The notes under the pieces were generated by a model. The model ran no database searches. It was not told the DNA's origin and saw nothing but the letters and a program-made list of their open reading frames with translations. From Chlorokybus atmophyticus (taxonomy: Eukaryota; Plantae; Mesostigma and Chlorokybus algae): 64,000 nt of DNA. The position numbers and the translations under genes were made by a program. Shown here in pieces: positions 12,224-64,000 of the stretch. The DNA is taken from NCBI GenBank assembly GCA_009103225.1, contig RHPI01001428.1, forward strand, positions 484,054-548,053. The letters run 5' to 3'. Position 1 is the first letter of the stretch. Each line of letters opens with the position of its first letter.

Positions 12224-15200
12224 TGTGCTATGCAGCCTGTTCGTTGGAGAACACTCACCGAAGGCAACTTAGCAGCACCTGCAGTGCAGGCGCCTCCTCC
12301 TCCTCTAACTGGTTCTGCACCGAGACATCGCCCATCTCCACAATTTGTGACTGATAAGACAGAGGCGGAGGGGGCAGCGTGGGATGCCTTCATGAGTCAG
12401 TTACACTCTACATTGTTGTCGCGCCTGCACTTTAAGGAAGACCATCAATGCAACTTGAAAACAAGCATGGTGCGAGACCAGGCACAACAACCCATCCAAA
12501 GCAGAGTTGTTTACTTGCCCTTGCTGCCATACAACCCTGATAGGCCTGACAACTTGCGCCTTGCACTAATGGAGCTAAAATCTAAGCTGCAGCTGGATGG
12601 TGTGGACACTAACCTGCTGGTGGGAGGTGATCAGAAAACTTGGTCGCTGATGCAGCAGCTGAAGCAGCAGGACCCTGTGTACTGGCAATGGCTCTTGCCC
12701 TTCCCAGGAGATTGGCATGCATCATACAACACCACACCAGTGGTGTACAAGGTGGCGTACGACTGTGGCCTTGAACCGATGGCACTGGCTGCTGGGTTCT
12801 CACTTGCTTCTGCCCGCAACCAGCTGGTGGAAGGTCACAACTGGAAGCGTGCACACACATTCCTTCTGGAGGGACTGGAGTCGATTAGCAGATGGCAAAT
12901 TGAGTGTTTTGCCAACAGCCCACAGGCGACGGGGCTGGAATTGCCTTCCGATTGGCCTGGCACCTTCGGCAGCGTTGACCCTGTTCTAGCGGTGCAGCAT
13001 TGGGATGCATTTCAGGATTATGGCCAGGAGCGTTCACACAAAGACATGACATGGGCTTTCTGGTGGCCATTCACACAAAGAGACGCAGCAGCATACTTCG
13101 CACTGTTCACGTCCATACGTACCGGCAACTGGACTCTGAGAATGGCTGCGTACAAAACACTGGCACCCTTGTACTTTGCTTGGGATCGTCCACATTATCA
13201 GAGACTGGTAGTTGGACACCTAGCCGATACCTTGGGCTGGCCTGCAGACGTACTAGCTGCTCTGCAAAATGGAGCATTCACAATATCAATTAAGGGCAGA
13301 ACAGGCAGCAATGTGGCGATTGACGAAGCTCATGAGACCTTGATCAATCGCGATCTTAAGACTTCATTAGCTCGCCCTACTCCGGACATGATGAGGGCAA
13401 AGACAGTATACTTACGTACCGCGCAGAGAGTCTGCAGGTCTTACGTGAAGAGCTGGCACCCGCCGAGCTGAAGAGGCGGAGACCTGGGCATGTTGCACGT
13501 GCAGACGACGCACACAGAACACAGAAGACAGTGGATGCCATGACTGCAGTGCTCCAGACTGCAGGCGCATTTGTCAATGAGAGCCCCACCTCACTTCAAC
13601 ATCTGATTAGTCATGAGACAGCATCCGACAATGTCACCTCTGACTTGTCACGCCACTACGATATTGGCAGGGACTCCATGAAACTATTCTGCAATCAGAG
13701 GTTCGGGGTTAGTGTTCCTGCTGCACGTGTTGGTCGCAGGCATAACCTCAAGACGATGGCAAAGCCAAAGCCCGTCAACCGCACTGCAAGATCACTCAAC
13801 AAAGTTGTCAAAGCCACGGTGAGACCATTCTGCATGCCATTCGTCCAGCCTATCGTACTGAACCATGCATGTACACTGCTCAGACTTTGGTGCTCAAGCA
13901 ACTTGCTATGCAAGACACGTCAGCAGATACCTTGCGTGCAAGATACTTGGAGGTGCCGCAGGCTTTGTTTGAACTGGAAGGACAAATGCGCAAGGGCAAC
14001 AAGTCTTCGTTCCTCAATAAGGTCGCGGACTCAGTGCCAGATTGCCAATCAAGAACATTCCCACATGACACACAATGCGTGATCAGCGAAGGAATGTTCT
14101 TGATCAACATGCAACCCGGTCCTGGCTGTATGACCATAGGAGACTATATCTCTCACCTGTTCCGGGCTGCTGTTATGCCAAGACTCTTTGGCCATGCACT
14201 CCAGTCACTGCACATTGTCTTCGACGATCCATCGCATGCTACAGGCGTCAAGACCTCATTGCAAAAGACAAGGGATGGCAGCGATGCAGTCGCGCCAACC
14301 CAGACAGAGCCATTACATATGCACACCAATACCTCGTGCCTGGCGCAGCCTGCTATCTGACAGGCTACGCAAGCGGCAGCTCTGCGATCTCATCACACAA
14401 CATCTTCCCGAAATTGCAGCACCTTACCTGCGCAATGGCCAGAGTCTTATTGTCGCCGGCGGAAGCGATCGTCCAGACTTGCAGGACATGGCTCGGGTGG
14501 CGCAAATGACGCCCTATGGCCCTGAGTACTCCATTAGCACTACATACACTTGCAATCATGCTGAGGCCGACAGCCGCGTATGGGTGCACGCCCATCGATC
14601 ACCAGAATCAGTTGTCCTCATTTACAGTCCGGACACAGACACAACAATGATTGGGTTAGCCATGCTGGAACAGTGGCATGGAACTCATGCAGCATGCAAG
14701 ACGGTATACATTCAGCTTGCAACTTCAGCTACTACATCTGTACGCCCTGCATTTATCAAACTCGACACCCTGCTCTCAGCCACAACCAACATGGCTCAAC
14801 TGCGGTTCATACCTGAGCCCAGACGTGCTGAATTTCTGTTAAAGTTTTACGCGGGGACTGGGTGCGATTACACCTCTTTCATAGCATCCATGAGCAAGGT
14901 CTTCCTTTGGGAGGAGGTCCTTCTGCACAACACAGAGTTCATAACTGCATGTGCGGATCCTGACTCTAGTTCCGACACAGCAATGCTACTACGATTGCTC
15001 GGTTGTGCTTACTTCATGAAGCACAAAAGATGCTTCAAAGCCAGCAACGCTAATGCTCTGTTTGTGGAGGTGAATGGCCTCACCTGCGATCGAGAGTCCC
15101 ATGTCGCAATTGGAAACTGGTTGGTCGCCATCCATGATGGCAGCTGGCATACGATTTGGAAAGAGACAGACAGAATGCCCACAGTGGACGCTCTCCACCT

Positions 15201-16441
15201 GCATTGCAAACGCAGTCAATGGGTAGTAGCCATGTGGATGCAAGCATGCTCCAGTGAACTCCGCATGCCAGACCTGAGCGAGTATGGTTACAGCATTGAC
15301 AGGGGTGTGTACACCGCTGACATGGACTCGGAGCAGAACATGGCAGAGGCCAGGAAGCGACGCAGCTTGCTGCTGCATGGATGCGGGTGCAAGAAGAATG
15401 GTTGCGGCACGAACCAATGCAAGTGCAAACGAGGTGGACATTTTTGCTCTACCAGCTGCCGTTGCATCAGCTGCAGGAATAGAGTCGACAGCAGCTCGCA
15501 GCATGAACCCTTTCAGACGCAGCGACAACAAACCCCCACAGGTTTGAACTGCCATGCAACAAAGCTTGGTAGCAACACAGAGACATATGCATGGCCATTC
15601 TCGCTATGCATCTGTTGCAGGCACTCCCATGTCCATACAGAAGGATGCAAGCGATTGCAACTCGATGGTGTCCAGCTCTTCAGAAAGTGCATGCACAGAG
15701 GACGAGGATCGGGACATGCAATTCACTCCGCAGCAAACCATGCACACTCAATTAGATAGCAACAGCGATTCTGATGATAGCGATAGCTTAGACAGCACCA
15801 CAAGTAGTCTATCGGCATCATCTTCATGAACTATACCCATACACAGGCGCAATACAGACGAGAGACTGCACAACCCCATGACCATATGCATTCTCACACT
15901 GTGCATGCCAGTCAAATGCACGCTCGCAGTTCACAACAACACAGGGCTCCACCAAGAGCGGTGCAAAACCTAGAAAATGTCATCTGACAGAGCGCCACAT
16001 GCCACCTGATCCCAGCTGGCAGCCAATGCAGGATCAGCTTCAGCACCCACATACAACTTGAGCTGCCAGCACCGCACCAGGCCGGTCTCCAATAGCAGGC
16101 GCAGAACCGGGGCACCAGCGCCACCCACGTCCACACACACCAGCTGCGGCAGCATAGAACCCACCTCGTCAGGTCGGGGAGCAGCGCCAGGCCGCCTTCT
16201 CCACTCACGGTCGTCGTGGATGCTCACATGAACCTCTAGGCCGCAGGAGAGTCAGGAGGCGATTGCCCTAATTAAATTGGGCTGATACCCGTAGGTGCAA
16301 ACCTCCCATCCCTCAAGAACATTCTTCTCATAACGGCCATCCCCTAGAGACGCAGAGCCGTTCCAACGCCCCCGCCGCCCTCGCCCAGCAGACCACAACA
16401 CCTCAACGACGTCGCTAACCCTCATGCTGGGAGACAAAGTA

Positions 16442-19400
16442 TGTTGAGAGTATTCCTACATACGATCAGCATCGACCCTCCACACAGGAGTAGAAGGTCG
16501 TAAGGACGAGCACTAGGTCCGGACTTAGCAAGATGGCATCGTCGGACCAGACTCCGGACTCCAGACAGGAGCCTTACTAACTGCTTCGTATCTCCGCGTA
16601 TACTTCCTCATATTAAGCGTGTAAGAGCTTGTTGGAAAGCTCTGGTTGTGAGAAAGACAACGCGGCTTAGAGCGCGTCAAAAGGCTGAGTATAGCTTACG
16701 CAGTGCTTGCAAATGTAGACGTGTGTGTAACTGGCTGGTATAAGAACCAGCGGACAACTTGTAATAGATGAATGTGATGTGACTTGTGTATGCTCTGGTG
16801 GCGGTAGCTCTGTCTCTGTGTGTCCATGCTTGCCTCAACTACATGTGCATGCTAGTCCTTCAACAGGTTATGGGCCCACACTACGCTTGAGGAGGAGTGT
16901 GAGACTAGCTTGTATGCATAGTAGTTCTACACTATAGTAGCTTGTTGGTAGCAGAGCCTTGGGTGTCAACTGCAAGAAAGGCAGGCTCGACAGAAATGGA
17001 GGCGACCTACGACAAGGGGCAGATTGCAAAGCTGGACACCGACAACTACAACACATGGTGCGTGGAGATGAAGGCCTTGCTCATCCACAAGAAGGTGTGG
17101 AAGTACGTTGATCCGAAGGCACCACCACCAACACCAGGAGCGAACACTGTGTGGTCAGAGCATTCAGCAGAAGCACACTCTTTGCTTGTGTTGAACAGCA
17201 AACCGCATCACTTTCCCATGCTCACTGCATGTGAAGATGGTAGACAAGCTTGGGAAAAGCTATCAGCCGTTTTCAGAGCCAAGAACAATGCCAGAAAGTT
17301 GCATCTACGCAAGCAGCTCAGCGCACTCAGGAAGGAGGCAGCAGAACCCATCACAAAGTATGTTGCGCGCGCGAGAGAGCTGTGGGCGGACCTCATCAAC
17401 GTCGGCCACAACATGGGGGAGACGGAGGTAGTGCTGGCCATTGTTGCAGGGCTACCAGCAGAGTACGAGGTCGTCGCAACCCTGCTGGAGACGTCATCAT
17501 CGGAGTTGACGTTGGACGATGTGCTACCGAAGCTGCTCACCGTGGAGCAGAGGGTTGTGAAGAAGGACGAGCAAGCGGATGCCGTCGCCTTCTACACCGG
17601 CAAGCACGCAAAGAAGAGCAACCATGAAGAGAAGTACAAGGGCAACAAGCCAGGCAATCCTCGTCACAAAGACCTCACATGCCACTGGTGTGGTTGGAAG
17701 GGGCACATTGTGAAGGACTGTAGGAAGAAACAACAGGGGCAACCTAGAGCAAGCACCAGCAACAGCGGCAACGAGCACCAACACAAGGAGAAACATGTCG
17801 CCTTCACTGCATCCAGTTCGAGGGCGGGCACAGCTTTCTGGGTGGTGGACTCTGGCTGCGATCGTCATCTCACACCAAACAAGGAGGTGATGGAGGGCTA
17901 CAGGAAGCTGACGTCCACAATCAAGGTGGCGGGCTTCGGTGGCGAAGTACTGGTGGCTGAGGGAGTTGGCAACGTACGACTCCAGTGCAAGGTTGGTAAC
18001 ACACTACGCGAGGTGTTGTTACGCAACGTCCTGCATGTTCCTAAGGCTATTGCGAGTCTATTCTCTGTGAGGGTTGCGGAGCGCTTAGGCGCGGAGATCC
18101 TATTTCGGAAGGGTGGCTGCTCAGTCATCCTTGATGGGGTCGTGCACATGGTTGGAATCGCTGATCCGGGAGGGCTCTACCACGTGGAGCAGCACCCTAA
18201 GGACATTGACATTCAAGCCATGGTGGTGAAGGACAAGGAGTCGCCAACATTGTGGCATCGAAGGTTCGGGCATCTCAGCTACGTCAACCTCACTCGCCTT
18301 GTCGCTGAGAAGATGGTCAAGGGCATCCATCTCAGCACAGAAGAACTCAAGAATGCATCAGGTGCACTTTGTGAACCATGCCTGGTTGCAAAGCAGCATG
18401 CTATGCCATTCCCATCATCCTCTTCTAGCAGTCAGCATCCTTGCGAGCTTGTGCACATGGATGTCTGTGGCCCTATGCGCATTGTGGCGAAGGGAGGGGC
18501 CAGGTACTTTGCTACATTCCTCGACGACTACAGCAAGCTGTCCATCATCTTTCCATTGACGCTCAAGTCAGAAGTTGCTGGAGCTGTGCGCACAGTTGTG
18601 GCCTTGTTGGAGACCCAGTCTGGCAACAAGATGAAGGCAATGAGGAGTGACCGAGGAGGGGAGTACATCAATAAGGAGTTGAAGGAGTTCTTCGCCAGCA
18701 AGGGCATACGCCACGAGACAACGGCACCTTACACCCCGCAGCAGAATGGAGCAGCTGAACGCCTCAACAGGACACTCTTGGAGCGTGTTCGAGCCATGCT
18801 CAACGACACAAAGATGGAAGACAGTCTGTGGAAGGAGGCGGTACTCACTGCCAACTACATCCGCAACAGGTCTCCGGTGAGCTCAGAGCAGAAGACTCCG
18901 TGGGAGCACTTCTATGGAGCCACACCAGATGTGAGTGGTATGCGTGTGTTTGGATGCACGGCATATGCACTAGTGCCTAAACAGCTCAGGCACAAGCTGG
19001 AGCCGGTCAGCAAGAAGGGCATCTTCGTTGGCTATGAACCGGGTTCCAAGGCTTACAGGATCTTGCTCAAGGACACTCAGAAGATCATTGTGAGCAGAGA
19101 GGTGGTTTTCCACAAGGAATTATCACAACCAGAAGCGGGCTTCTTTCCTGAAGATGAAGCACAGCCGGAGCATCCTGAAACAGTGGAGGCTACAGGCAAG
19201 GCCATCATCGACAATAAGGGTGAGCAGGACTCTACTGTAGCAGACAAGCAGTCGCACCTGCAGCAGGAGCACGCAGCTCGGAGATACCCAGTGAGGGAGA
19301 GAAAGGCACCTGACTTCCTACACAAGGCACACATCGCCAGTGTGCACAATGAGGATCCAAGCACCTACGAGGAGGCATTGTTAGCACCAGATGAGGAGCA

Positions 19401-21351
19401 ATGGCAGCGTTCTATGGACGAGGAGATTGCGTCACTCCATGCCAACAACACTTGGTCACTGGAGCAGTTACCGCAAGGAGTGAAGACCATTCCAGTGAAA
19501 TGGGTCTTCAAGGTGAAGCGTGATGGTCAGGGCAACATTGAGCGCTACAAGGCAAGACTGGTGGCAAAGGGCTTCTTGCAGCAGGAAGGTGTGGACTTCA
19601 ACGAAGTGTTTGCACCTGCAAGTAAGCATACCACCTTCCGTGCACTGCTAGCTGTGGTTGCCGCTGAGGACCTCAAGCTGCATCACCTCGACGTGAAGAC
19701 TGCCTTCCTCTACGGAGAGCTGGAGGAGGAGATCTTCATCGAGCAACCACCTGGATATGAAGAAGGGGAGAGAGGCACAGCGTGCAAGCTGATCAAGGCA
19801 CTGTACGGGCTGCGACAGGCACCGCGTATGTGGCACATCAAGCTCACCAAGGAGCTTGAGGCACTTGGCTACACCGCATCCTCTGCAGACCCTGGGCTCT
19901 TCATCCATGCAGACAACAAGGTCTGGCTGCTCGTGTATGTTGATGATATCATCATCACCGCCAGGCAGGTGCACCACCTGCAGGAGACGAAACTTGCTCT
20001 ACAGCAAGCATTCTCAGTTCGTGATCTTGGAGAGGCCAAGTGGTTCCTTGGCATGGTGATTGAGCGCGACAGGGCGGCTCGCACAATCAAGATCAGTCAG
20101 GAGCAGATGGTGAGAAGACTCGTCACCAAGTTTGGGCTCACTGAAGCGAAGACCAAGACCGCACCGTTGGCACTTGGCACTGCCCTCATCAAGGCACAGG
20201 ATGAGGAGGTACTCGACAAGGCTCAGTATCCATATGGTGAGCTGGTAGGCAGCATGCTCTATCTGGCAGTGTGCACACGTCCCGATGTTGCACATGCTGT
20301 GGGAGTACTTGCTCGCTACATGTCTGCACCGAGCATGGAGCACTGGAGAGCAGCAAAGGGAGTACTACGCTATGTTGCTGGGAGCGCAACAGTTGGCATC
20401 AAGTTTGGGAGCGGTAGCACGGAGTTGGAGGGCTACTGCGACTCGGACTTTGCTGGTGACCTCAACAGCAAGAGGTCCACTACAGGCTACGTCTTCAAGC
20501 TGAACGGAGGTGTGGTGAGCTGGAACAGCAGGCTGCAGCCAACAACAGCAGCATCTACATCAGAGGCTGAGTACATGGCAGCGGCAGCAGCAGTGAAGGA
20601 GGCACTCTGGCTTCGCAAGCTCATGGCAGACTTGGAGCACCCCATGGCGTGCATCGTCATCAACTGTGACAACCAAGGAGCCATCAAGTTGTTGAAGCAC
20701 CCTATCGCCTCGGCAAGGACGAAGCACATTGATGTCATGCATCACTTTGTGCGTGACAGAGTCACAAGGAAGGAGGTGGAGTTCCAGTACTGCAACACCG
20801 AGGGCATGCTGGCGGACTTCATGACAAAGCCATTGTCACCACTCAAGTTCAAGACTTGTTGTGCAGGACTTGGCATCTGTGTTTGACTACAGAGCAAGTG
20901 TTGGAGGTCAAGCTGCTCGCGTGGGAGTGTTGAGAGTATTCCTACATACGATCAGCATCGACCCTCCACACAGGAGTAGAAGGTCGTAAGGACGAGCACT
21001 AGGTCCGGACTTAGCAAGATGGCATCGTCGGACCAGACTCCGGACTCCAGACAGGAGCCTTACTAACTGCTTCGTATCTCCGCGTATACTTCCTCATATT
21101 AAGCGTGTAAGAGCTTGTTGGAAAGCTCTGGTTGTGAGAAAGACAACGCGGCTTAGAGCGCGTCAAAAGGCTGAGTATAGCTTACGCAGTGCTTGCAAAT
21201 GTAGACGTGTGTGTAACTGGCTGGTATAAGAACCAGCGGACAACTTGTAATAGATGAATGTGATGTGACTTGTGTATGCTCTGGTGGCGGTAGCTCTGTC
21301 TCTGTGTGTCCATGCTTGCCTCAACTACATGTGCATGCTAGTCCTTCAACA
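16442..21351 (+). mobile_element. Intact Ty1/copia retrotransposon with a half-tRNA-iMet-type PBS (Osser-like)
   Basis: 424-bp LTRs at 16442-16865 and 20928-21351 with no differences found by eye, TSD AAGTA, PBS GGTTATGGGCCCA at 16866. Confidence 0.98.
16996..20886 (+). CDS. Copia gag-pol polyprotein (gag, CCHC knuckle, protease, integrase, RT, RNase H)
   Basis: CHWCGWKGHIVKDC, WVVDSGC, LWHRRFGH, HMDVCGP..SDRGGEY..NGAAER, YVDD, YCDSDFAG; uninterrupted ORF. Confidence 0.97.
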   Translation: MEATYDKGQIAKLDTDNYNTWCVEMKALLIHKKVWKYVDPKAPPPTPGANTVWSEHSAEAHSLLVLNSKPHHFPMLTACEDGRQAWEKLSAVFRAKNNARKLHLRKQLSALRKEAAEPITKYVARARELWADLINVGHNMGETEVVLAIVAGLPAEYEVVATLLETSSSELTLDDVLPKLLTVEQRVVKKDEQADAVAFYTGKHAKKSNHEEKYKGNKPGNPRHKDLTCHWCGWKGHIVKDCRKKQQGQPRASTSNSGNEHQHKEKHVAFTASSSRAGTAFWVVDSGCDRHLTPNKEVMEGYRKLTSTIKVAGFGGEVLVAEGVGNVRLQCKVGNTLREVLLRNVLHVPKAIASLFSVRVAERLGAEILFRKGGCSVILDGVVHMVGIADPGGLYHVEQHPKDIDIQAMVVKDKESPTLWHRRFGHLSYVNLTRLVAEKMVKGIHLSTEELKNASGALCEPCLVAKQHAMPFPSSSSSSQHPCELVHMDVCGPMRIVAKGGARYFATFLDDYSKLSIIFPLTLKSEVAGAVRTVVALLETQSGNKMKAMRSDRGGEYINKELKEFFASKGIRHETTAPYTPQQNGAAERLNRTLLERVRAMLNDTKMEDSLWKEAVLTANYIRNRSPVSSEQKTPWEHFYGATPDVSGMRVFGCTAYALVPKQLRHKLEPVSKKGIFVGYEPGSKAYRILLKDTQKIIVSREVVFHKELSQPEAGFFPEDEAQPEHPETVEATGKAIIDNKGEQDSTVADKQSHLQQEHAARRYPVRERKAPDFLHKAHIASVHNEDPSTYEEALLAPDEEQWQRSMDEEIASLHANNTWSLEQLPQGVKTIPVKWVFKVKRDGQGNIERYKARLVAKGFLQQEGVDFNEVFAPASKHTTFRALLAVVAAEDLKLHHLDVKTAFLYGELEEEIFIEQPPGYEEGERGTACKLIKALYGLRQAPRMWHIKLTKELEALGYTASSADPGLFIHADNKVWLLVYVDDIIITARQVHHLQETKLALQQAFSVRDLGEAKWFLGMVIERDRAARTIKISQEQMVRRLVTKFGLTEAKTKTAPLALGTALIKAQDEEVLDKAQYPYGELVGSMLYLAVCTRPDVAHAVGVLARYMSAPSMEHWRAAKGVLRYVAGSATVGIKFGSGSTELEGYCDSDFAGDLNSKRSTTGYVFKLNGGVVSWNSRLQPTTAASTSEAEYMAAAAAVKEALWLRKLMADLEHPMACIVINCDNQGAIKLLKHPIASARTKHIDVMHHFVRDRVTRKEVEFQYCNTEGMLADFMTKPLSPLKFKTCCAGLGICV

Positions 21352-21946
21352 AAGTAGCCATAAATTGCTCCCCCTCTCCCGCCGCCACGGTCTCGGCGCC
21401 AAGGCTGTCAGGCACAGCATGGACAGGCCCACCCGCCATGCCGCCCCGCCCCCCACCCGCCCCTCGCACACCGCCGCCGCCTGCAACGCTAACCTTACTA
21501 CACTAGCCAAACTCACCAGCATCACACTTCACATCAAACCCATCACACGATTTTCTCACACATCATGCGCCGGTCAGCATAATGTCAACCATACGTCAGC
21601 TGCCTGACACAATATTGACACAACCACACATTGCCACCAATCATACTCGCGAACAGGCAGCAGAGCGCGTGACATTCATTGCGATCACACATTATCACCA
21701 CAGAGAAGGGTCCTCTCGCGACTCACTAGATACTGCCACGACAGCACAAAGCTCATCAACGGCCCACTTATCGCGTCCAATGTTTGCTCGGGGCAGGCCG
21801 CTGGGCTTTCCGGCTGATTAGGCAAGTCGCGACCTATCGATGATGGCACTTATGAAGTGACCAATTACGATGTTATTGGATCGAGAAACAACGACCGCGG
21901 AATTCGTGTGCAAGGCAGGAACCCGGGTCTCAAGCTCCGATACCAA

Positions 21947-51460: not shown

Positions 51461-51935
51461 AACGGACGACCCGATATAGTGGTATCAAGTATGGAACAGT
51501 CACGAAGCTAATGGGGAAATGCTTATGCCGGCTGTCTGAGATTGTAGCTGACCGACGGTCACGATCGACGCTAGCAACGTCGACATACTCGTTGTAGCGG
51601 GTGAATGTTGTTGATCTGCACCGATGATCCCGGTGGCGTCGACGTGTTCAGTCTGCGCTGTGAATGTGCGTCCTAACGGGGTTTATCAGCTGTTAGGACG
51701 CGGAGGTTGTTGTGTGCATCACGTCGAGATGGCGTATGTTGACCGTTGTCAACAGCCGTTTCCGCTCGTGTGCTGAGGGTGGGATGACGTCGATGAGACA
51801 GAGGCACGCAGCTAAACCCGTCGTCAGTGCGCGATATCGACGTTGTGCAACGGTGTGCGCTTTTGAAAATTTGGTAGGGGAGGGCGGTGAGTGTGCAAAC
51901 AGCATAGGTGTCTGGTGTTGTGGGCGGTGGCGACA

Positions 51936-54900
51936 ATGGCGGAGGAGATTGATGTAGCAACGCTCGTTGAGCAGCAGCGGCAGAAGCTTGCTGAGTTAGA
52001 GGCTGCTCGCAAGGAGCGATGTGCAAGCCAGAAAGATTATGCCAGGCGGCGCTGCAAGGAGGACAAGTATGTCGTCAACCAGCTCAGGGAGGAGTTGGGT
52101 TTGAAGAAGTCCAGGATGAATGCCACAGGGGTCTTTATGTATGCCTTAACGTCTGGCAATACGTGGAGCTGGGTCGGCGACCACCTAGTTATGAATCGGA
52201 TGGCAGGAGTGAGTGTATACATGCTGCCGGTGGCGCAGTGTTGAGCATAAGTGTTTGGACTGATATACAGGAGATTCTGTGTCTAAGTGCATCCTTGTTT
52301 TGTGCTGCAGGATGTGCCACGTCTGCTTGCAAGTTCAACACCACTCCGCTGTGAGGAGGTGCTCATAGTTGGTTAGTTGTGTGCATCGTTGGCGCTGCAA
52401 TTGCATTGGTGGCTGACTAGTTGTGTATGCAGAACGATGATGATGTGGATATTGATCCATCTGAGTCTGAGGACGAAGACCAAGAGAACATCCCACCAGC
52501 GTCTCAGCTAAATAAACGACAGAAGTCTTACCATGCGTCCGGACAGCAGCAAGTCCCATCTTTAGCTGCCCTGCAGCAACAACCATACAATTCCCGCATC
52601 AATCGTGACGGCAATCGCGTCCTGCTTGGTCCTAACATAGCCAGACTCAATGGCAATGCAAGGTCTATTCCGAGGACGCCCAAAACTCCGGGGGCCCAGG
52701 CGCAAGGTGGGCGCATGCCGTAGTAGGTTCAGACAGACAGCTTGACAGGAACATCTTCAACTGCATGTTGATGTTGAGCTACTGGATGTTAGCAGATTGG
52801 TATAGCACGAGTGTCAATTTGGTGTACCCTTTGCCTAGTGATGGACATTGATGTGAATTGTGCTGTTGGTGCAGAGTTTGCACCTGCTGTGAGTGTGGAC
52901 TCAACGCCTGTGCATGCTGCGATTCCTACGTGTAGACAGACCCGAATATTCAGCCAAGTTGAGGTATCACACTCTGTGCACCGCTTGTGTTTACGTTAAC
53001 AGCTGCTGTAGTCAATAGACGTGTGGTCTAAAAATGAAGGGACTGCCTGTCTAGAGTTGCATAGATCCACTAAGTGCCGCTTGGTGTGGGCAATGTAATA
53101 TGTTTAGGGGGGTTGTGTGCAATCACAACGCTCGTCATGCATGCATACCAGCTTAGCTGTCTCATAGTCTGGCAGATGGTGAACTCATTGCTGTACATAT
53201 TGGGTAGGAGTGTCAGTGTGGGTTATATACTACTACTGGCGATGAGATTGCGCTGTTGTTGTCTATATTGGTCTCATCACTGTGGTGCTTGGCTAGTTTC
53301 TTCGGCAAGAAGTTCTACGCCTGACGACCGAGCTGGACACCGCTCGTGTGGAGCGCGACGGGATGTGCGCTGAGGCGGAGGTACTGAGACAGGCTGTGCG
53401 CGACAGAGAGGTGCCTGTGCAAACATCTGCGAGCACGGCGCTCGAACGGGCTCAGCGGGAGGCTTGTCGTTGGCATTCAAAATGGCAGGTGCGTATGACA
53501 ACCTGGTATAATGTTGATGGAATGCCCTGGTGCATTCTGCGTTGTTGAGACAACAACCACCCTAGGACCCTGCCAATCTGCTGTCATCTTTACCTGTCAG
53601 TGCGGTGATCTGAGATCAGTTTGGTCCTGCAGGAAGCTGATGAGCGGTTGGCAGCGCAGCAAACACGGCATGACGCGCAACGTGAGGAGGATGCGTGCCA
53701 ATTAGAGGAGGCGCATGAGGAGGCGGATCACCTATTACAGCATGTTCAGGTTAGTGTATGTATGGGGTGATCAACCATGCTCGTAGAGCATGAATGGGCA
53801 TGGGCTAAATTTGGGGTTGACATGTTGTATAGTTGCTGGAGACCAGTGTGCAGGAGGAGGTAGATCAGTACAAAAGCGAGAAACAGCAGCGTCTGTCGGC
53901 AGAGCAAGACAGGGACGGTTACCGCATGCGACTGGTGGAGCTTGAGGAGGTAATCACTGGGCTGCGCGATACAATGCGAAGCCGGAGGGTGGCGCAACCC
54001 TCTGCGCATGATGCACAGGTGGCGGAGGAGGTCCGATTATTATATGTGGACGAGGTGACGGCTGCAGCGCAAGAGGAAGTAGCTGATCCTCTTGCTCGTG
54101 CGGTGAAAGATGTAGCGGCGCAACTGCTGCAACGGGATGCCGTGGTGCTCCTCACCGCTGTAGCTGCAAAATACAATGTCAAACAAGCCCGGGTGTTGTT
54201 GAGAGCAGTGCAATCCAGAATTCCGGGTGCAACCATGCACGTGACTGGTGCGAAACAGCAAGGGACGCTGCTCATTGCAGCTTGGGCTGACCCCTTGGCC
54301 TGTCTGCTACGGCATGCCATAAGGGTGACTGATGTGCCAACTACCACGCAGTCCAAAGGGAGTGGTCCCGCCTCACCAGACGGAGATGAAGTGCCGGCAG
54401 CAGTGTTGCGTACCTTGAATAGGCTCATGGATGTGGAACGCAAACGGCTGGTGGAGCGCAACAGAATGGACCACGACTTGCGCTTCGTCGATTGGCTTGT
54501 GGAATGGGAGACATCCGGGGCGACATTACGCAAGGTCTTTGGTGCCTTGACAGGCTACAACGTGATGGAGCGAGTGAAGACACCCGGGGAGCGGCATGCG
54601 CACTCTCTGGCAGTCCTGCGAAACAAAACTCTGTTTCTCACGCACTCTGCTGTGTATGCAAGGAGCCGGTGGGCCTCCTCTCCTGTTCATATGGCAGTCA
54701 GTGATGCTGTGGATGCTGCAACCAACGGGAACAAGCTCATCAAGACACTTAATCGTATTGGAGTCGCAACCAGCAGGAGCCACTTGGACCGTCACGTACA
54801 TCGCCGGGCATTGCACAACCTCAAATCGCCTGCTCGACTGCAGCCGCAGCCAGGGATGCATGTACTCGCATCCATTGACAACATGGATGTCCGTGCGGGA

Positions 54901-57503
54901 CATCAGGCAAAGTACAAAGGAAGAACTACTGGTGATATACATGCTACATCAACTCAGCTCACCTCTACCAGCGGCCGACAATGCACTGGGCCTCTCGAAT
55001 TGGAGGTGAGCTCCAATGTCATCTGCCTAGGACGTGTGCATGCGCGCAGCCATCATCATTGTTGGTTTCACTTACATGTTGTCGCCTGGCATGGACAGCG
55101 TACGCGCAATCGCACATTGATGGAGGCCATGATATCTGCGCCATTGTCAGAGGCTATGCCGCCCCCACCACCACGCCCTCGTCAGACCGCCACAGTTCGC
55201 AGCGAACCTATCCTGAATTTGATGCCAGCTGAGACTGCCGCCCTCAACTCGTTCAAGGTCTCTATGCACAACACTGTGGTGTTTCGAATGCGTCAGGAGC
55301 AGCAGGCGTCACTGCCTACACTCAAGGACGACTGGGCGCGCTATCTGCACAGTGCACAAAGCGAGGAGCCAACTGTGCCCAATGACATTGAGTACCTTCC
55401 GGTGCTGCCCTTTTGCCCTGACAAGATCGATAACCTGAAGATAGCCTTGCTCCAGCTGCGTTGCAAGGTGCACTTGAGTGACACGCAAAGCAAGATCTGC
55501 GTCACGGGAGACCAAAAGACATTTGCACTAATGGTAGCGCTGAAGAAGGCGGAGCCAGGATATTGGGACTGGTTGGTTCCTATTCCTGGAGACTTTCATG
55601 TGCTCATGAATATGCAGCCCGTGTTGATGAAGATGGCATGGGATGCCGGTCTCGATGCTTTATCACTGGAGGGCGGCTTCTCCAACTCGACAGCGCGTAA
55701 CCACCTGGTTGAAGGTTTGCATTGGAAGCGCATCCACAACTTCTTGTGCAAAGGTTGGGAGGCTGTGTACCGGCGCATGCAAGACCTGTGGTGGGAGCAA
55801 GAGAGCGCAGTCAACAAACAGATATGCGAACAAGACTGGGCGCAGCATGGTGTATTGGCCACCAAGCCACGCCGATTGATTGAAATATTTTGTGAAGACA
55901 AGGCAAACTATGATGCTACATGGCAGTTCTGGTGGAGCTTCGTCGATAGAGACATGCTGCATTACCTCGGCCTGTTCTGTGCTGTGCGAAAAAAAATCTG
56001 GCACCTGAGGCTGGCGAGCTGGAAAGGTCTTAGCCCACTGCCGTTTGCCTGGGACCGATTCAACTACCAGAAAGTGATGACACTGCACTTAGCGGAACTC
56101 CAGACCATGCCTGCCTCACTCCTGGAAATGCTGGCTGCCGGAGGCTTTGCAGTGAGCTTGACAGGCACGCCAGGACGGTTGGTGGCTCTGGACGAGGCAC
56201 ACGAGTGTCTTGTTAACCGAGACATGAAGATGACATTATACAAGCCCACTACTGAGATGCTTAGGCAAAAGTCCCAGTACCTCGGGGAGCGCAGCCAATC
56301 CCAGAAGCAACTGAGTCGGCAGTTACTTCTGGAGACAGAGCCAACCAACCATGACATGGATACTGATGCTGATGATGACAGCCATAGGGTGCTGCGCACT
56401 CTGGCTGCAGATGCCTCGCATTGCGGGAGCGACATCGGGTACATGGTTGATCTACTGAGTACTAGTAAAGCTTTAGCTAGGCCGCCCTGCCAGGACTTGA
56501 CCTGATCGGTCTGGCGGTAACGGAGAGGTGGGATATGGCGTTGAAGGAGGTCACAGTGCAGGTGGCGCAGCACTCACGGGCAGGATCACGCCCTCCATTC
56601 ATCAACCTCACACGCCTCCAGGAGCATGTCGCAAGAATGCACCAGCTGCACAGCATTACTGTCGGACGGCGTAGTTGGTTGCTGCTGCTAGTGTATGCTG
56701 CCACCGGCAGCGACTACACGTCATTCATTGGCGGCATCTCAAAGCAGTTCATCTGGAGAACAGTCATGGCTCAGCATGCAGACTTCATCACTGGAGGCGT
56801 CAATGAACAAGAGCACGAGATGTGCTTTGCAGTGCTACGCTTGCTGGGCTGTTCCTACTTTGAAAAGTACCGTTCGTCCTTCGACTCTGGGACTCCTGCC
56901 TCACTGTACTTCGAACTGCACGGCGCACACGCTACTACCAGTGACAAGGTGTTTTTAGGGGACTGGCTTGAAGCTATTCACAAGACTATATGGAAAAAAA
57001 CCGCCACTCCACGTGACACTATTCCTACAGTCGATGCCCTATGGCTGCATGCCTTACGCTCGGTATATGCAGTCCAAATGTGGATGCAGAGTTGTGAACA
57101 AGACATGCATCTACCGGAGTTGACGGAGTATGGTTTTAAGCTGGATGATGGCGTGTGGTGTGCAGTGCAGGATCTTTCAGAAAACATGGCAGCAGCCATT
57201 ACTCGTCGACAAGTGCTCATGCATGGGTGCGTATGCAAGGTTGGACGTTGCAACAGCAAGAGATGCAAGTGCCGAAAGGCTGGCAAGTCATGCACGGACA
57301 GCTGCTCATGCATTGGGTGCAAAAACCACCTCAACGGCTGCTCGGCGAATGAGACTGTGGAACCTGCGGCATGCACCGTTGAGGAACCACAAAACCAACA
57401 AGCAATAGCAGAACCTAGCAGGCACGAAGATTGGACGTTGGAGGACAGCAATGATGACAGCGACGTGGAGGACTTGACCAACATGGACATGTACGACATC
57501 TAG
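51936..57503 (+). pseudogene. AcademX transposase / XPG / CXC gene with an internal deletion of the PIN core
   Basis: ASIDNMD, GDQKT, PIPGDFH, ALDEAHE, TGSDYTSF, PTVDALWLH and CXC CVCKVGRCNSKRCKCRKAGKSCTDSCSCIGC. The segment seen in element 1 between ~13570 and ~14690 has no counterpart; the reading frame breaks at 56505/56535. Confidence 0.8.
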
Positions 57504-57790
57504 TCTATGCACACCATGACCGACCCTGTGTTGTGACATTCCGTCGCTGCACCTGCCCAAACCCTCCACGCCGCCGCGGCCGCCGCCACCGCCGCCGCCG
57601 CCGCCAAGCAATCCAGCATAGCGTGTCGCGGATGAGTCGACACCTTTAGGGGTCGCTACCAGCGTATTATTATTCACACACATTATTAGGGTTTGGTGCT
57701 GACTTTTAGGGTTAGTGTCAACTTGTGCTGTTGGTTGCACTGAGTTGATTCCATATCAGGTTGATTGCTTCACGCGTGCAAGCAGCGTCC

Positions 57791-59634
57791 ATGCCTGAGC
57801 TGTCCCGAGGCAGGACATGCCTGGTGTGCGAGGTTTGCCATGCGTATGTTGTCAACAATGGGCAGAGGGCGCGCCTCGAGCGTCATCAAGCCCAGTGCAG
57901 TCAGTATCACACACGGTTTGGTTTTACTGCCCCTTGCTGGCATCACATGTGTGGCGGTGATCACATTATTCATTGCCGAGGCAAGCTAAAGTGCACTCTG
58001 CCGGAATTCTTCCATAGTCAATGCACGTGCAGTCTGTGCGAGAGTGCTCCGTTCGAGTGGCATGGGCAACCTATGCGATACATGCCATACGCACGGCCTG
58101 GCTCCATTGCAGATGGCCAGATCGTGAATCTTGCCAAGGTTAGTGATTATCACCAATGGCACAATGCATGTTGTCAAGCCCTCTATTCAGCATAGGTTGC
58201 ACGCATCCTAATAAACACACGTGCGCATAGAGCTGTCGCGCCAGATGTGGTCGAGGACAGGTGGACTTGAATAACACGCGGCGGATCGATAGTGAGGACG
58301 GCGTATGCAACGACCAAGTGAGCTCTGTTCAGTCGTTTAGGCTCTGTGCTGTTATCTATACAAACAAGTCGCTCAGCCTGAGCATCACTTGCAGTTAAAC
58401 CTCCAATTACGCGTGCGTGTGTTCGCGCGTTGCGGGACCTACTGTATGCTCATCCTTGTTAGTATGTTAGGTAGCAGTTGACAAAGAAGAGGTCCTTCAT
58501 TCAACACGGCAGCGATGCGTGCATGGTGGGCATTCGCTGGTGGGATTGAGGACCATGGTATATTGGCCGGCGGACAGCGCTTGGTATGAGGGCGCCATAT
58601 ACGCACACAACAGTCAAGTCGGTGCGTGATTGCTTGCAAATGGCCCTGACTTCAAGTGACATTGATTGCGCCATCTGTGTACAGGAAGGCACAGTGTTCG
58701 ATTTGTTGACGGTGACGTGCAGCACCTCCACATCGACAAGCACAACATTGTGGTCGTGCTCACTCACGATGGCAGTGACAAGTGCATGGTCGTGGGCGGA
58801 CGCAGAGTGTCCACCAACAGAAAAGTTTCGCCGCCGCTGCCAAGTATCCCGTTGTGGAGGACGTCTACCCCACAGCTCATCACCCACACCGCTACCCGGC
58901 GTAGCGGTGAACCTCACCGCCCTAAGCTCCTTGACCTTTGTTGCGGTGGGGGTGGAGCCAGCATGGGACTCTATCGCGCCGGCTTCGATGTCACGGGTGT
59001 GGATATCCAGGAGCAGCCGGAGTACCCATTTCCATTCATCCAAGGTGACGCCATGACAGTGGACCTGCTCCCTTACGACATCATATGGGCCAGCCCGCCC
59101 TGCCAGGCATTTGCGCGTTGCATACCAACCGCACAACGTCGACAGCACGGTGGCTCGTGGCACCACAGCACACTGCTGCATGACTTGCGCTTGCGTCTGC
59201 ACGACAGCGGCCTTCCTTTCGTACTAGAGAACATTCCGGATGCTTCCAAGTACATGAAGCCGAACATGGTCCTCTGCGGGACCATGTTTGAATTAGCAAC
59301 TTTCCGGCACCGAGTCTTTTAAACCTCCCCCGTTGTTGACGTTGAACTGGTTTGTGACCACACAGACAAGAGACTAGGACTATTGTCAGGGCACCAATCT
59401 GCCAAGGCCCTTACTGACGTGCATGCCGTGCCCAAGCAGATGTACCCCATTTACGGACATGCCTCCTCGCGCGGAACCACACTCGGGTGGAGCCAGGCAC
59501 TTGGCATTGATTGGATTACATCCGAGTCCACGTTGGTAGAGTGCATCCCCCCTGCATACTCCGAGTATATTGGTCGCCAAATGTTAACAGCAATGGGGTA
59601 CTCAGTACTTAGTACACCTCTGTCATGGCCTTGA
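57791..59634 (+). pseudogene. Cys/His-rich + Tudor + prokaryote/phage-type C5 DNA cytosine methyltransferase; 3 predicted exons, one in-frame stop
   Basis: Predicted exons 57791-58138, 58471-58621 and 58685-59634 splice in frame. Tudor VYWPADSAWYEGAI..GRHSVRFVDGD. MTase motifs I LDLCCGGGG, II GVDI, IV WASPPCQ, VI LENI, VIII RHRVF, X ECIPPAYSEYIG. TAA at 59320-59322 sits where GAA (F-E-T-S) is expected. Confidence 0.85.
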
Positions 59635-60142
59635 CGCTTTGAGCCACTTACACAATTGCAGCCCGATGTTATATGCATACCAGTCCTGTTGACATACTGT
59701 CACACTGACACACACCACCTTAACGCTCTGCACACCATATTATGTGTGTGGCCTAACCCAATCGAACCCACTGTCAGCCACAACGTTTTTTTTTTCTTGA
59801 CAATGAACCCCTAACATGCTGGCACGCTTAGCAAACACACCACACTACCAGCGAATAGTAGTGAAAATCCTACACAGCAGCAGCAAGCGCAGTAATCAGG
59901 GTACATGCACTACAGTAGGCTGCTCAGGCAACGTTTGTACAAGGGAAAGTGTATGCGGGTAACATTGATCGCAGCGTGCAACCATCCAGGTCGTCACATT
60001 GTTGACGCTCTGTCTCGCGCATTCGCAGCATTAGTACAACCTGCACACACAATGTCATTATCTCTCAACACTGAGAGATAGACAGCAGGCGCAGCTCATT
60101 AGCATGACAACAGCCACACATTCTCACACACCACATGCAGCT

Positions 60143-60947
60143 CTACACGCTCCACTGCAGCTTGCAATTGGCGCAGCAATGCCACTCTGAAACTGACATG
60201 AGACACAATGGACACCTACAGCATCTCCCGACATCACATTGCGCCAGACACTGCGCCACACACAAATCACACCACACACAGCCCACGACAACATGCAGCA
60301 CAGCAACCAGGTTCGCACAGTACCTACCAGTGTTTGTTGGCATGACGGGATGCCATCCACCTCCCTGGACTGCAGGAGGTGGATGTGGCAAGCCGGGATT
60401 GTCGTCGTCACCACGGTCCCCGCCTTGCAGAGGATGCAGACTCCACTGCCCAACCTCAAATGGCAACCACTCAGTGTCATGCCACTGCTCTACCCAATGT
60501 CGTCTTCGTCCAGGGTCCATATCACATTCAGTGCCAATCACCCACCGCGCTAGCGCAACACCTCCCACCACATGCTCTACCACCAGCAGATCACTACCCA
60601 GCCGCTGAGGGAAGCCGGGCACACGGCGCAGACGATGCAAGCTAAATCTAAAACCAAAACCACCCGGCAAGGCGACATGCAACTCTCTGACACCATTAGC
60701 ATCACCAGCAGGCATACCCATTATATGCACCGGCGATCCGATGGATACCTGTCAAGCGCAGAACAATAATGGCGACAGTATTGTTGGCAATTACCACCTA
60801 ATGCACAGGAGAACCGGCTGGCTAAAACAGCACCTGGTCATATGCAGTCTGGTAGAAGGTCTGGCTGCGCAAAATAGACGGGAGAGAGCCGCCCAGAGCA
60901 AACGTTACCGCCGGTGCATGCACACCAGCCTCGCCTTGATCCGCCAT
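60143..60947 (-). CDS. Convergent second gene of AcademX-2, unknown function
   Basis: ATG at 60947; 114-bp exon (MADQGEAGVHAPA...AYDQ); 85-bp GT-AG intron (60833-60749); in-frame exon from 60748 continuing into the 195-aa ORF. The 3' end is uncertain. Confidence 0.55.
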
Positions 60948-61286
60948 CAAGCTCCGCACAGACGTCGCCCGCAAGCTGCCCCTCACACGACAATCTGACC
61001 GACACTGGCCACCACCCGAAGCACAGACTGCCTAGCGACGGCGACACAACCCTAACAATCCGTAGAACTCGCGCTGGCGGGAAACGGCAGCACACCGTTG
61101 CAGAGAGAACAGAGATCGCCGTTGAACAACAAACAACTTACATATCACCAACGCGCATAACAGTTTGTTTACCACAGCACACCGCCGACTGGCAGCGCAC
61201 CGCCCATGTCGAAACAACGCGGTCGACAATGATCCGTCAGCGCCGACGCTACACACCTCACCGTCGGTTGCAGCTGGTTCGCCAAC

Positions 61287-64000
61287 CATATCAACCGCGA
61301 TCAACAAGTGTCACACAACGCATAACAACGGTGCATGAACGCCAACACACGCTGCACACACACTCAACAACGTGCCCAGGCCGGCACAAGCTATACCAGC
61401 AGTTAGACGTGTTAGCTTCGTGACTGGGAAGGTGGGGAACGATCGGCGATCCGAGGTAATCCCAATTTTCCATCGCCGCGTCCCTGCTCAGCCATTACGC
61501 GCCGACGATGTTCATCACCGTCGACTGGTTGTGTCGGCGTCGGCGTGGCCGCTCACCTGAGCCAACCATACTGAACGACGCTCAACGGTCAACTACATTG
61601 AAGTCAACTATACTATATATACTCAAGACAATTGGGCTGGCGTTATGTGACATTGATAGTGTGCTGTTCACACTTCCTATACTTTGCATGTTGGTATGGT
61701 GTAGCACACAATGATTGATAAGTGTGTCAATATCATTACAAAGTTTTAAATACTTGCACGGCATCACTCTCACATGCATATACATATACATTTATATGAA
61801 CAAAACTTGACAGTTGCAAGCACGCAGATATTTACAACTTCAAGTCACATAAATGGACAAAATGTATTGCAGTCTATACGTGTATGTGACATTGATAGTG
61901 TGCTTGTTTACGCTTCCTATACTTTGCATGTTGGTATAGTGTAGCACATAATGATTGATAAGTGTGTCAATATCATTATAAAGTTCTAAATACTTGCACG
62001 GCATCACTCTCACATGCATGTACATATACATTTATATGAACAAAACTTGACAGTTGCAAGCACGCAGATATTTACAACTTCAAGTCACATAAATGGAAGA
62101 AATGTATTGCAGTCTATACGTGTATAAACGAAGCTTAATCACTTCTACTAATACATTCAAGTCATTACATAGGATTGAAGGTCACTCACTCCGCGTGTCA
62201 ACTACTGCACGCACGTGCGTGTGTATGTACATGCACACATCCGTTGCACGTAGTTGTATTTGGGTAGGTATAGTTGTGTTATTGTAAGCGGCTGTAAGCT
62301 TTACACCCCAGCTAGATGAATTGTTCATACCTGTGTGTTCGTTATGCTTGTTGTGAGTGTTTCTTACCTACATTGTGCATGATCCTTTATGTATACTGAC
62401 GGGTTGTGCCGCACGCTTGAACGCACGCTTAGAGCGCACCCACACTGACACCATCACACACACATATAAGACAAAAACTAACACGCACATCAATGTGAGT
62501 GCTTCATGGTGTGAGTTGACTTGTTCCGCGTGTCACACTCTCGTGCATGCCGCAATCCTTGCATTCTATATATCACACATGCAGCACAAACACACGCACA
62601 CATGCACAAAACCCACCAAGTCAACATCCTTTACACAACCAGATCTAAGGGGCTGGCTAGGGAGACATGGTGGGTTTTGTGCATGTGTGCGTGTGTTTGT
62701 GCTGCATGTGTGATATATAGAATGCAAGGATTGCGGCATGCACGAGAGTGTGACACGCGGAACAAGTCAACTCACACCATGAAGCACTCACATTGATGTG
62801 CGTGTTAGTTTTTGTCTTATATGTGTGTGTGATGGTGTCAGTGTGGGTGCGCTCTAAGCGTGCGTTCAAGCGTGCGGCACAACCCGTCAGTATACATAAA
62901 GGATCATGCACAATGTAGGTAAGAAACACTCACAACAAGCATAACGAACACACAGGTATGAACAATTCATCTAGCTGGGGTGTAAAGCTTACAGCCGCTT
63001 ACAATAACACAACTATACCTACCCAAATACAACTACGTGCAACGGATGTGTGCATGTACATACACACGCACGTGCGTGCAGTAGTTGACACGCGGAGTGA
63101 GTGACCTTCAATCCTATGTAATGACTTGAATGTATTAGTAGAAGTGATTAAGCTTCGTTTATACACGTATAGACTGCAATACATTTCTTCCATTTATGTG
63201 ACTTGAAGTTGTAAATATCTGCGTGCTTGCAACTGTCAAGTTTTGTTCATATAAATGTATATGTACATGCATGTGAGAGTGATGCCGTGCAAGTATTTAG
63301 AACTTTATAATGATATTGACACACTTATCAATCATTATGTGCTACACTATACCAACATGCAAAGTATAGGAAGCGTAAACAAGCACACTATCAATGTCAC
63401 ATACACGTATAGACTGCAATACATTTTGTCCATTTATGTGACTTGAAGTTGTAAATATCTGTGTGCTTGCAACTGTCAAGTTTTGTTCATATAAATGTAT
63501 ATGTATATGCATGTGAGAGTGATGCCGTGCAAGTATTTAAAACTTTGTAATGATATTGACACACTTATCAATCATTGTGTGCTACACCATACCAACATGC
63601 AAAGTATAGGAAGTGTGAACAAGCACACTATCAATGTCACATAACGCCAGCCCAATTGTCTTGAATATATATAGTATAGTTGACTTCAATGTAGTTGACC
63701 GTTGAGCGTCGTTCAGTATGGTTGGCTCAGGTGAGCGGCCACGCCGACGCCGACACAACCAGTCGACGGTGATGAACATCGTCGGCGCGTAATGGCTGAG
63801 CAGGGACGCGGCGATGGAAAATTGGGATTACCTCGGATCGCCGATCGTTCCCCACCTTCCCAGTCACGAAGCTAACACGTCTAACTGCTGGTATAGCTTG
63901 TGCCGGCCTGGGCACGTTGTTGAGTGTGTGTGCAGCGTGTGTTGGCGTTCATGCACCGTTGTTATGCGTTGTGTGACACTTGTTGATCGCGGTTGATATG
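61287..64000. repeat. Large fold-back inverted repeat: arms 61287-62618 and 62668-64000 (right arm reaches the window edge), 49-bp spacer
   Basis: The last 40 bp of the window are the reverse complement of 61287-61326. Mirrored ORFs appear in the ORF track (e.g. 61291- vs 63814+, 62093+ vs 62999-). Confidence 0.97.
61645..62124. repeat. Tandem dimer of a ~240-bp AT-rich unit (mirrored at ~63162-63642)
   Basis: ATGTGACATTGATAGTGTGC.. recurs at 61645 and 61884; AATGTATTGCAGTCTATACGTGTA at 61861 and 62101. Confidence 0.92.

Follow-up and report, generated by a model that had tools for sequence, protein, structure and literature searches.

A viral- and phage-type DNA cytosine methyltransferase fused to a Tudor domain and interrupted by one stop codon in a DNA transposon of the alga Chlorokybus atmophyticus

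The DNA described here, in the following called the window, is a stretch of 64,000 nucleotides from the green-lineage alga Chlorokybus atmophyticus (assembly GCA_009103225.1, contig RHPI01001428.1, positions 484,054 to 548,053 of the forward strand); all coordinates count from its first letter unless another contig is named. As outlined in Table 1, a DNA transposon in this window holds, behind its transposase, a gene of three predicted exons in which a Cys/His-rich region and a Tudor domain are joined to a compact C5 DNA methyltransferase. With rather more confidence than doubt we read this gene as a nearly intact, disabled copy of a transposon cargo gene, whose intact copies are most likely chromatin-guided writers of 5-methylcytosine (5mC).

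The methylase part contains the motifs of a complete compact C5 methyltransferase, as the first-pass annotation of the DNA had claimed, and the catalytic motifs are kept. Comparison with 233 relatives gave 52 columns conserved in at least 85% of them, 48 of which are matched by the window copy, including the invariant Ser-Pro-Pro-Cys, Glu-Asn and Arg-His-Arg. The other four columns hold a Cys for Phe in motif I, a Leu for Ile, an Ile for Val and a stop codon for Glu. With respect to the median of two mismatches per family member, a copy with four mismatches, the stop included, is barely decayed. The stop is a TAA, which the same annotation had placed at an expected Glu codon, and the corresponding column is indeed Glu in 98% of the relatives. 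Past the TAA the reading frame continues unchanged up to the conserved C-terminal motifs. Since this stop lies in frame, a full protein is impossible and the window copy is a pseudogene. Two ways around the TAA were considered and rejected: an alternative code with TAA as a sense codon, given that TAA and TAG are both absent from window open reading frames (ORFs) as long as 890, 1016 and 1314 codons, and removal of the TAA by splicing, which would also remove the conserved Phe-Glu of motif VIII.

In terms of kind, the methylase was proposed to resemble phage, prophage and actinobacterial enzymes and not DNMT1, DNMT3 or CMT, and this assignment is supported. The part upstream of the stop matched the PHROG family phrog_363 ('DNA methyltransferase') with an E-value of 2.8e-22. 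The piece upstream of the stop, the gene having been scanned in pieces, scored below the gathering threshold of PF00145 (19.2 bits vs 22), while most of the close homologues carry precomputed PF00145 matches. A word-indexed search yielded 667 relatives and an exhaustive HMMER search 3,730, mostly proteins of 200–230 residues which are often annotated as DNA (cytosine-5)-methyltransferase; the best among the matches listed reached E-values of 1e-50 to 1e-38 at 50–56% identity over the catalytic half. When the stop was read as X, residues 10–233 of 245 were collinear with enzymes of 210–230 residues at 42–45% identity. AlphaFold modelled the N-terminal 141 residues (58897–59319) with a predicted local distance difference test score (pLDDT) of 90.4, and the top fold matches of the model in the PDB were DNMT1, DNMT3A/B and the methylase of prophage Cp-933R (template modelling (TM) scores of 0.56–0.66, generic methyltransferases 0.43–0.49), with DNMT2 also among the fold matches. 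Likeness to the host DNMTs is confined to the level of the fold, at 15–19% identity, and the nearest sequences are viral and bacterial. A sequence search of the PDB (E up to 1) returned no DNMT1, DNMT3, MET1 or CMT chain, and PDB and NCBIfam searches with the methylase piece gave generic S-adenosylmethionine (SAM)-binding matches only. Judged by sequence, the methylase is placed outside the host families DNMT1, DNMT3, DRM, CMT and DNMT5.

Upstream of the methylase lies a Tudor domain, for which a likeness to the Tudors of plant PDS5 and MSH6 had been noticed early on and is borne out by a solved structure. The 62 residues of the spliced domain matched chain A of PDB entry 7DE9 with an E-value of 7e-8 over 49 ungapped residues. 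This entry is the Tudor domain of Arabidopsis RDM15/PDS5C bound to histone H3 monomethylated at lysine 4 (H3K4me1), in which Trp616, Tyr623 and Tyr641 form the cage, Asp643 and Asp645 select monomethyl-lysine and Glu647 holds H3R2 (PMC8184781). By alignment, four of the five methyl-lysine contacts (Trp616, Tyr623, Asp643 and Asp645) are identical in the window protein and the fifth, Tyr641, is conservatively replaced by Phe; Glu647 is replaced by Gln. The Tudors of Arabidopsis PDS5C/RDM15 and MSH6, both readers of H3K4me1 (PMC8184781), hence represent the best solved match but differ in the H3R2-binding Glu and in their partner, which is a cohesin regulator or a mismatch-repair protein there and a methylase in the window. 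In the exhaustive HMMER search no protein among the matches listed matched upstream of the methylase, save the unrelated zinc-ribbon protein P0068. A metagenome scan for Tudor-methylase fusions revealed none among the matches listed, and a tblastn search of exons 1 and 2 and the transposase against 249 fetched loci gave no match.

The Tudor alignment also bears on the exon-intron structure, as it runs without a gap across the junction of exons 2 and 3 once intron 2 is removed and is thereby the sole independent support for splicing. Exon 2 lacks its own start codon and thus requires an exon upstream of it, and from the splice signals, the matching phase and this need for a start codon we infer that intron 1 is spliced. 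The initial description of two in-frame introns stands as far as the GT..AG signals and the support of intron 2 by 7DE9 are concerned; the length of intron 1, however, is not a multiple of three, and 'in frame' applies only in the sense that both exon phases are 0. The GC content of exon 1 at the three codon positions is 0.58/0.49/0.59, compared to 0.61/0.43/0.60 for the transposase ORF (890 codons), and all three exons (about 0.58–0.64/0.44–0.49/0.56–0.71) follow this transposase-like pattern, from which the introns deviate. For exon 1, neither a Pfam, NCBIfam nor Atlas family was found (the best score, 0.84, is noise), no homologue was detected among 5.8 billion proteins in the range of 64–203 residues, and the AlphaFold model was unusable (pLDDT 38). 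Fragments of the window sequence were found in one thin DNA sequencing run. The contigs of this run are identical to the window and comprise intron as well as exon pieces, with one fragment falling within intron 1 (58284–58435), and they stop 9 nt before the TAA. The spacer which separates the transposase stop (57503) from the start of the methylase gene (57791) contains a run of GCC/CGC triplets (57569–57605, within 57540–57610).

That the gene is borne by a transposon, as had been stated, follows from the inverted ends and the GGAA duplication which bracket both the transposase and the Tudor-methylase gene. The 15-mer CAGTCACGAAGCTAA occurs in the window only at the left end, at the right end and in a palindromic copy of the right end, and beyond it a weaker subterminal similarity continues inward. 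By our estimate about 0.1 inverted 15-mer pairs per 15 kb are expected by chance, to be multiplied by 1/256 for the duplication. The CXC ORF of 322 residues differs in frame from the ORF of 890 residues and is consequently either joined to it by an intron or split from it by a frameshift. A further gene downstream of the methylase (59.7–61.4 kb) was considered and rejected, as this region is low-complexity, skewed sequence whose ORFs have no significant match.

Table 1 Features of the transposon and of the Tudor-methylase gene within the window.
Feature	Position	Strand	Remarks
Left target-site duplication	51493–51496		GGAA, read directly
Element	51497–61426		9,930 bp; transposase and cargo between inverted ends
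Left terminal inverted repeat	51497–51511	+	CAGTCACGAAGCTAA, exact 15-mer
Transposase ORF	53833–56505	+	890 residues, DUF6589; PF20231 E 1.1e-6, above cut-off; Atlas neighbours eukaryotic DUF6589 clusters
Second transposase-gene ORF	56535–57503	+	322 residues, CXC (tesmin/TSO1-type) domain; PF03638 E 4e-5
Tudor-methylase gene	57791–59634	+	three exons, two introns; Cys/His-rich region, Tudor, compact C5 DNA methyltransferase
Exon 1	57791–58138	+	ATG start, 116 codons, Cys/His-rich; donor AAG/GTTAGT
Intron 1 (predicted)	58139–58470	+	332 nt, GT..AG; acceptor TGTTAG/G; from splice consensus and matching phase 0 only
Exon 2	58471–58621	+	first Tudor half, from 58528; VYWPADSAWYEG
Intron 2	58622–58684	+	63 nt, GT..AG, phase 1; in-frame TGA inside
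Exon 3	58685–59634	+	second Tudor half (to about 58760), linker, C5 methyltransferase 58921–59598, TGA stop
Motif I, LDLCCGGGG	58930–58956	+	SAM binding; usual Phe is Cys
Motif IV, ASPPCQ	59089–59106	+	catalytic Cys codon 59101–59103; Cys invariant in the 233 relatives
Motif VI, ENI	59227–59235	+	
Motif VIII, RHRVF	59305–59319	+	
In-frame TAA	59320–59322	+	only disabling lesion
C-terminal IPPAYSEYIG	59545–59574	+	
Rest of element	59635–61411		about 1.8 kb, no recognisable gene; C/A-rich, skewed; ORFs without significant Pfam match
Right terminal inverted repeat	61412–61426	-	reverse complement of left
Right target-site duplication	61427–61430		GGAA

A second element with DUF6589 and CXC genes is located in the same window (4762–21816) and has no methylase. 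It shares about 40% protein identity with the first (7285–13414, 40% identical to the ORF of 890 residues; 14692–15516, 41% identical to the ORF of 322 residues) and ends in 23-bp inverted repeats, CAGCCGGAAAGCCCAGCGGCCTG, which start with CAG and are flanked by a 4-bp ATTA duplication. Two nested long terminal repeat (LTR) retrotransposons, a Ty3/gypsy chromovirus (ORF 8705–11755) and a Ty1/copia element (ORF 16942–20886), interrupt it. Since this 40%-identical sister element does without the methylase, the latter can be regarded as accessory cargo.

With its DUF6589 and CXC transposase, its CAG ends and its 4-bp duplication, the methylase-bearing element is plausibly Academ-like. The Academ label given at first sight is partly sustained: the termini read 5'-CAG and the 4-bp duplication fits the rule for AcademX, for which duplications of 3–4 bp are described (PMC10045372), but no ORF of either element matched an XPG nuclease family at E-values up to 5, a search in which the HMMER filters or divergence could hide one. 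For want of a detected XPG nuclease, and with Academ references outside a comparison that covered DUF6589 membership only, the label is provisional.

A separate observation concerns the right-hand edge of the window, which is reached by a perfect palindrome of 2.7 kb (61287–64000, centred near 62643). Its arms (61287–61665 with 63622–64000 and 61665–62622 with 62664–63621) are 100% complementary. The palindrome holds the right end of the element, with a second copy at 63861–63875, and a 240-bp tandem repeat (61644–62125). It represents either an inverted copy of the element which continues past the window or a fold-back artefact of the assembly.

Concerning the origin of the methylase, more than 285 relatives lie on phage-sized viral contigs of 40–70 kb and 504 in bacterial genomes, notably of Streptomyces and other Actinomycetota, Acidobacteriota and Chloroflexota; one relative, P0071, sits in the prophage-like part of a bacterial contig of 325 kb. 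A maximum-likelihood tree of 69 sequences, without host DNMTs, placed the window protein in a clade with P0126, P0127, P0128, P0131 and P0190, which is nested among phage and bacterial enzymes and supported by 100% bootstrap, not fully settled, and 98% in the Shimodaira-Hasegawa-like approximate likelihood ratio test. Members of this clade share an insert behind motif IV and have a longer tail at the C-terminus. P0127 and P0131 lie on contigs whose tightly spaced genes lack introns and include those for a fused topoisomerase IIA, an mRNA-capping triphosphatase, a ribonucleotide reductase small subunit, protein kinases and a U-box protein, as well as a TnpB-like ORF; a capsid gene was not observed on these contigs. 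By this gene content they appear giant-virus-like (Nucleocytoviricota-like), whereas no diagnostic gene is present on those of P0126 and P0128. The best predicted viral structure match was the C-5 cytosine-specific DNA methylase of Pithovirus LCPAC201 (A0A481Z4Z4; 45% identity, TM score 0.82). With its nearest relatives on giant-virus-like contigs and in Pithovirus, the methylase would more probably have had a giant virus as its immediate source than a bacterium or a phage. Thus, of the earlier proposal that a bacterial or phage methylase had been acquired horizontally, the phage/bacterial kind of the enzyme is retained while the immediate source shifts to a virus. The lineage of the methylase, which is common in phages and prophages, has probably passed through giant viruses, and the transfer between virus and alga may have run either way.

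Two relatives of this clade contain a methyl-CpG-binding domain (PF01429) between motifs VIII and IX (P0126, L004 2028–3050; P0128, L005 447–1616), and for P0127 (L166 9239–10534, with the next ORF) this domain is encoded in a separate downstream ORF. Such a combination of a methylase and a methyl-CpG-binding domain has the look of a viral reader-writer of 5mC; the window protein is devoid of the insert. Two further observations were made among the relatives. On the giant-virus-like contig L166, an ORF of 610 residues (18137–19969) matched the TNB domain of Cas12f/TnpB type with an E-value of 3e-5, just under the Pfam cut-off, and possibly represents a Fanzor/TnpB element in the vicinity of the viral methylase. 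The metagenomic proteins P0124 (453 residues) and P0125 (447 residues) consist of two tandem copies of the small methylase domain per chain.

For comparison with known systems, the small C5 methyltransferases of phages and prophages (PHROG 363, about 215 residues, from tailed-phage contigs, Streptomyces and other bacteria) are collinear with the window enzyme from end to end at 42–56% identity and share the catalytic motifs and the IPPAY motif. These are intronless single-domain proteins, whereas the window gene is predicted to be spliced and nuclear, is fused to Tudor and Cys/His-rich regions and resides in a eukaryotic transposon. Among the C5 methylases of giant viruses and giant-virus-like contigs, P0126, P0127, P0128, P0131 and P0190 form the nearest clade (100/98), with the insert behind motif IV and the longer tail in common; identity to these and to A0A481Z4Z4 of Pithovirus LCPAC201 is 45–52%. 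P0126 and P0128 carry the methyl-CpG-binding domain between motifs VIII and IX and no Tudor, whereas in the window protein the variable region is short and a Tudor is present at the N-terminal side. Mobile elements with a cytosine methyltransferase of their own have been described as SymbioLINE-Dnmt, SymbioDIRS-Dnmt3 and Klebsormidium Copia/Gypsy-Dnmt3, some of whose enzymes have de novo methylation activity at CG (de Mendoza et al. 2018, PMC5890265). These retrotransposons carry mostly eukaryotic DNMT3, in contrast to the viral/phage-type enzyme with a histone-reader fusion in a cut-and-paste DNA transposon found here.

The same report also cites methylase-carrying DNA transposons in marine giant viruses (PMC5890265). 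Among these viral elements, Mariner-1_OLpv encodes, besides its transposase, a C5 methylase and an EcoRII-like nuclease (Bao and Jurka 2013, PMC3627910), and together with Mariner-2_PGv it resembles the window element as a DNA transposon with a methyltransferase (C5 DNA methylase) as an extra gene and a link to giant viruses (PMC3627910). Both Mariner elements, however, reside in viral genomes, encode a restriction-type nuclease alongside the methylase and are devoid of introns and of a reader domain. Another enzyme of the 5mC pathway is known as DNA-transposon cargo from fungi, where TET/JBP dioxygenase genes occur in 11 lineages from unrelated superfamilies, among them Plavaka and EnSpm (Kojima 2025, PMC12730594); TET/JBP is an eraser of 5mC and the window gene a putative writer in a green-lineage genome. 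Virus-derived 'orphan' DNMTs of eukaryotes are generally without companion domains (PMC12344493). The early remark that DNMT capture had been reported for retrotransposons of Symbiodinium and Klebsormidium is therefore correct (PMC5890265), but the precedents are wider and include the C5 methylase of a DNA transposon (PMC3627910) and TET/JBP (PMC12730594). Full-text word searches of the literature revealed no earlier description of a viral-type methylase fused to a Tudor domain within a nuclear DNA transposon.

The anatomy, family placement, transposon boundaries and lesion set out so far are the observed ground on which the proposed mechanism would stand. In intact copies, which are presumably expressed, the Tudor domain would dock the enzyme on nucleosomes with a low-methylation lysine mark, probably H3K4me1, and the methylase would then write 5mC on nearby DNA, its presumed substrate in place of RNA. 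A mobile element would thereby supply its own chromatin-guided DNA-methylation writer, presumably to its own benefit. Self-marking or counter-silencing by such 5mC, as the first-pass annotation had proposed, is conjecture. Such a reader-writer mode is the likeliest one suggested by the identity of the domains. The CpG observed/expected ratio of the window is 0.71 and lowest in the copia element (0.54), with TpG and CpA at 1.46–1.48 and GpC at 1.26. This CpG depletion together with the excess of TpG and CpA is a deamination signature and therefore suggests CpG methylation of the host DNA, whichever enzyme is responsible.

Several points weigh against this reading of the gene. The reading frame of the window copy ends prematurely behind motif VIII, and the Cys for Phe in the SAM-binding motif I is possibly a weakness of the enzyme. 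The status as cargo is derived from a single bounded copy in the window, and exon 1, for which neither a homologue nor a confident fold was obtained, is included in the predicted gene by way of splice signals, phase and the missing start of exon 2. No RNA run was found among the sequencing runs matching the stretch. For the Tudor domain, five Tudor-type Pfam models matched with E-values of 0.003–0.14, all below their curated cut-offs, and the mark it reads may differ from that of RDM15 owing to the Gln in place of Glu647. Among the matches listed, genomes other than this one yielded no fusion of a Tudor with a methylase, which is weak evidence. Finally, the interest of the finding is limited by the putative nature of its expression and activity, by the pseudogene state of the window copy and by the published precedents.

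Among the alternatives, we consider it unlikely that the methylase is a passive passenger, i.e. a gene which was trapped by Pack-type capture or as a nested remnant of an endogenised giant virus, brings no benefit to the element and decays in all copies. The pseudogene in the window would agree with this, as would the paralogous element in the window which manages without the gene and the silent virus-derived 'orphan' DNMTs known in eukaryotes (PMC12344493). The single lesion and the 48 of 52 conserved columns, on the other hand, argue for recent constraint, and the acquired introns, the host-like composition and the eukaryotic reader domain are hard to explain without a period of nuclear function.

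An improbable explanation is self-protection or self-regulation, in which the enzyme would methylate the DNA of its own element or its excised or replicating copies and thereby block a host nuclease or tune the binding of the transposase, with orphan phage methylases and virus-borne restriction-modification cassettes as analogues. The Tudor would then serve only for retention in the nucleus or on chromatin. The methylase family is overwhelmingly phage- and prophage-borne, and in Mariner-1_OLpv of a giant virus the C5 methylase indeed comes with an EcoRII-like nuclease (PMC3627910). In the window element, by contrast, no nuclease partner is recognisable, and a histone-mark reader with a conserved methyl-lysine cage points to chromatin targeting.

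There is little to recommend an RNA substrate as for DNMT2, or a loss of activity with a remaining role as a DNA- or chromatin-binding module. DNMT2 is found among the fold matches, motif I carries the Cys for Phe, and the substrate of orphan DNMTs is not predictable from sequence (PMC12344493); but the closest relatives are DNA methylases of phages and giant viruses, the methyl-CpG-binding domain inside giant-virus relatives ties the clade to methylated DNA, and all catalytic motifs are kept. Scarcely credible, and close to refuted just as the first-pass annotation had expected, is a bacterial or phage contaminant misassembled onto eukaryotic DNA, or a set of chance ORFs: the perfect 2.7-kb palindrome with the element's right end at the window edge, where the assembly is maybe not fully reliable, and the thin coverage in the sole matching DNA run speak for it, whereas the methylase frame extends, beyond a GT..AG intron on its upstream side, into a eukaryotic Tudor, the GC content by codon position matches the adjoining transposase, read-derived contigs are identical to the window over intron and exon pieces, and the E-values are far beyond chance.

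DNA methylation normally is a weapon of the host against transposons. If our reading of the gene as transposon cargo with chromatin-guided writers among its intact copies is true, mobile elements can write chromatin-guided 5mC themselves and might do so to mark, hide or tame themselves, or to act on host genes. One gene would connect a reader domain of plant type with an enzyme of phage type that came by way of giant viruses, and would be a natural, very small reader-writer fusion (about 480 residues) which is directly testable. As the copy itself is a pseudogene, its value lies in the clean boundaries which enclose transposase and cargo. In view of the known parallels, namely the DNMT of retrotransposons, the virus-borne Mariner methylase and the fungal TET/JBP, the finding would be a plausible extension and not a wholly new principle. 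A more far-reaching picture, which we regard as doubtful when taken as a whole, joins several steps: intact members would be active de novo methyltransferases, steered to transcribed chromatin by a Tudor of the H3K4me1 type, acquired from giant viruses and passed between the unrelated Academ-like, Plavaka and CACTA superfamilies. If this were true, mobile elements would write part of the methylome of the alga, as the writer counterpart to the TET/JBP erasers of fungal transposons.

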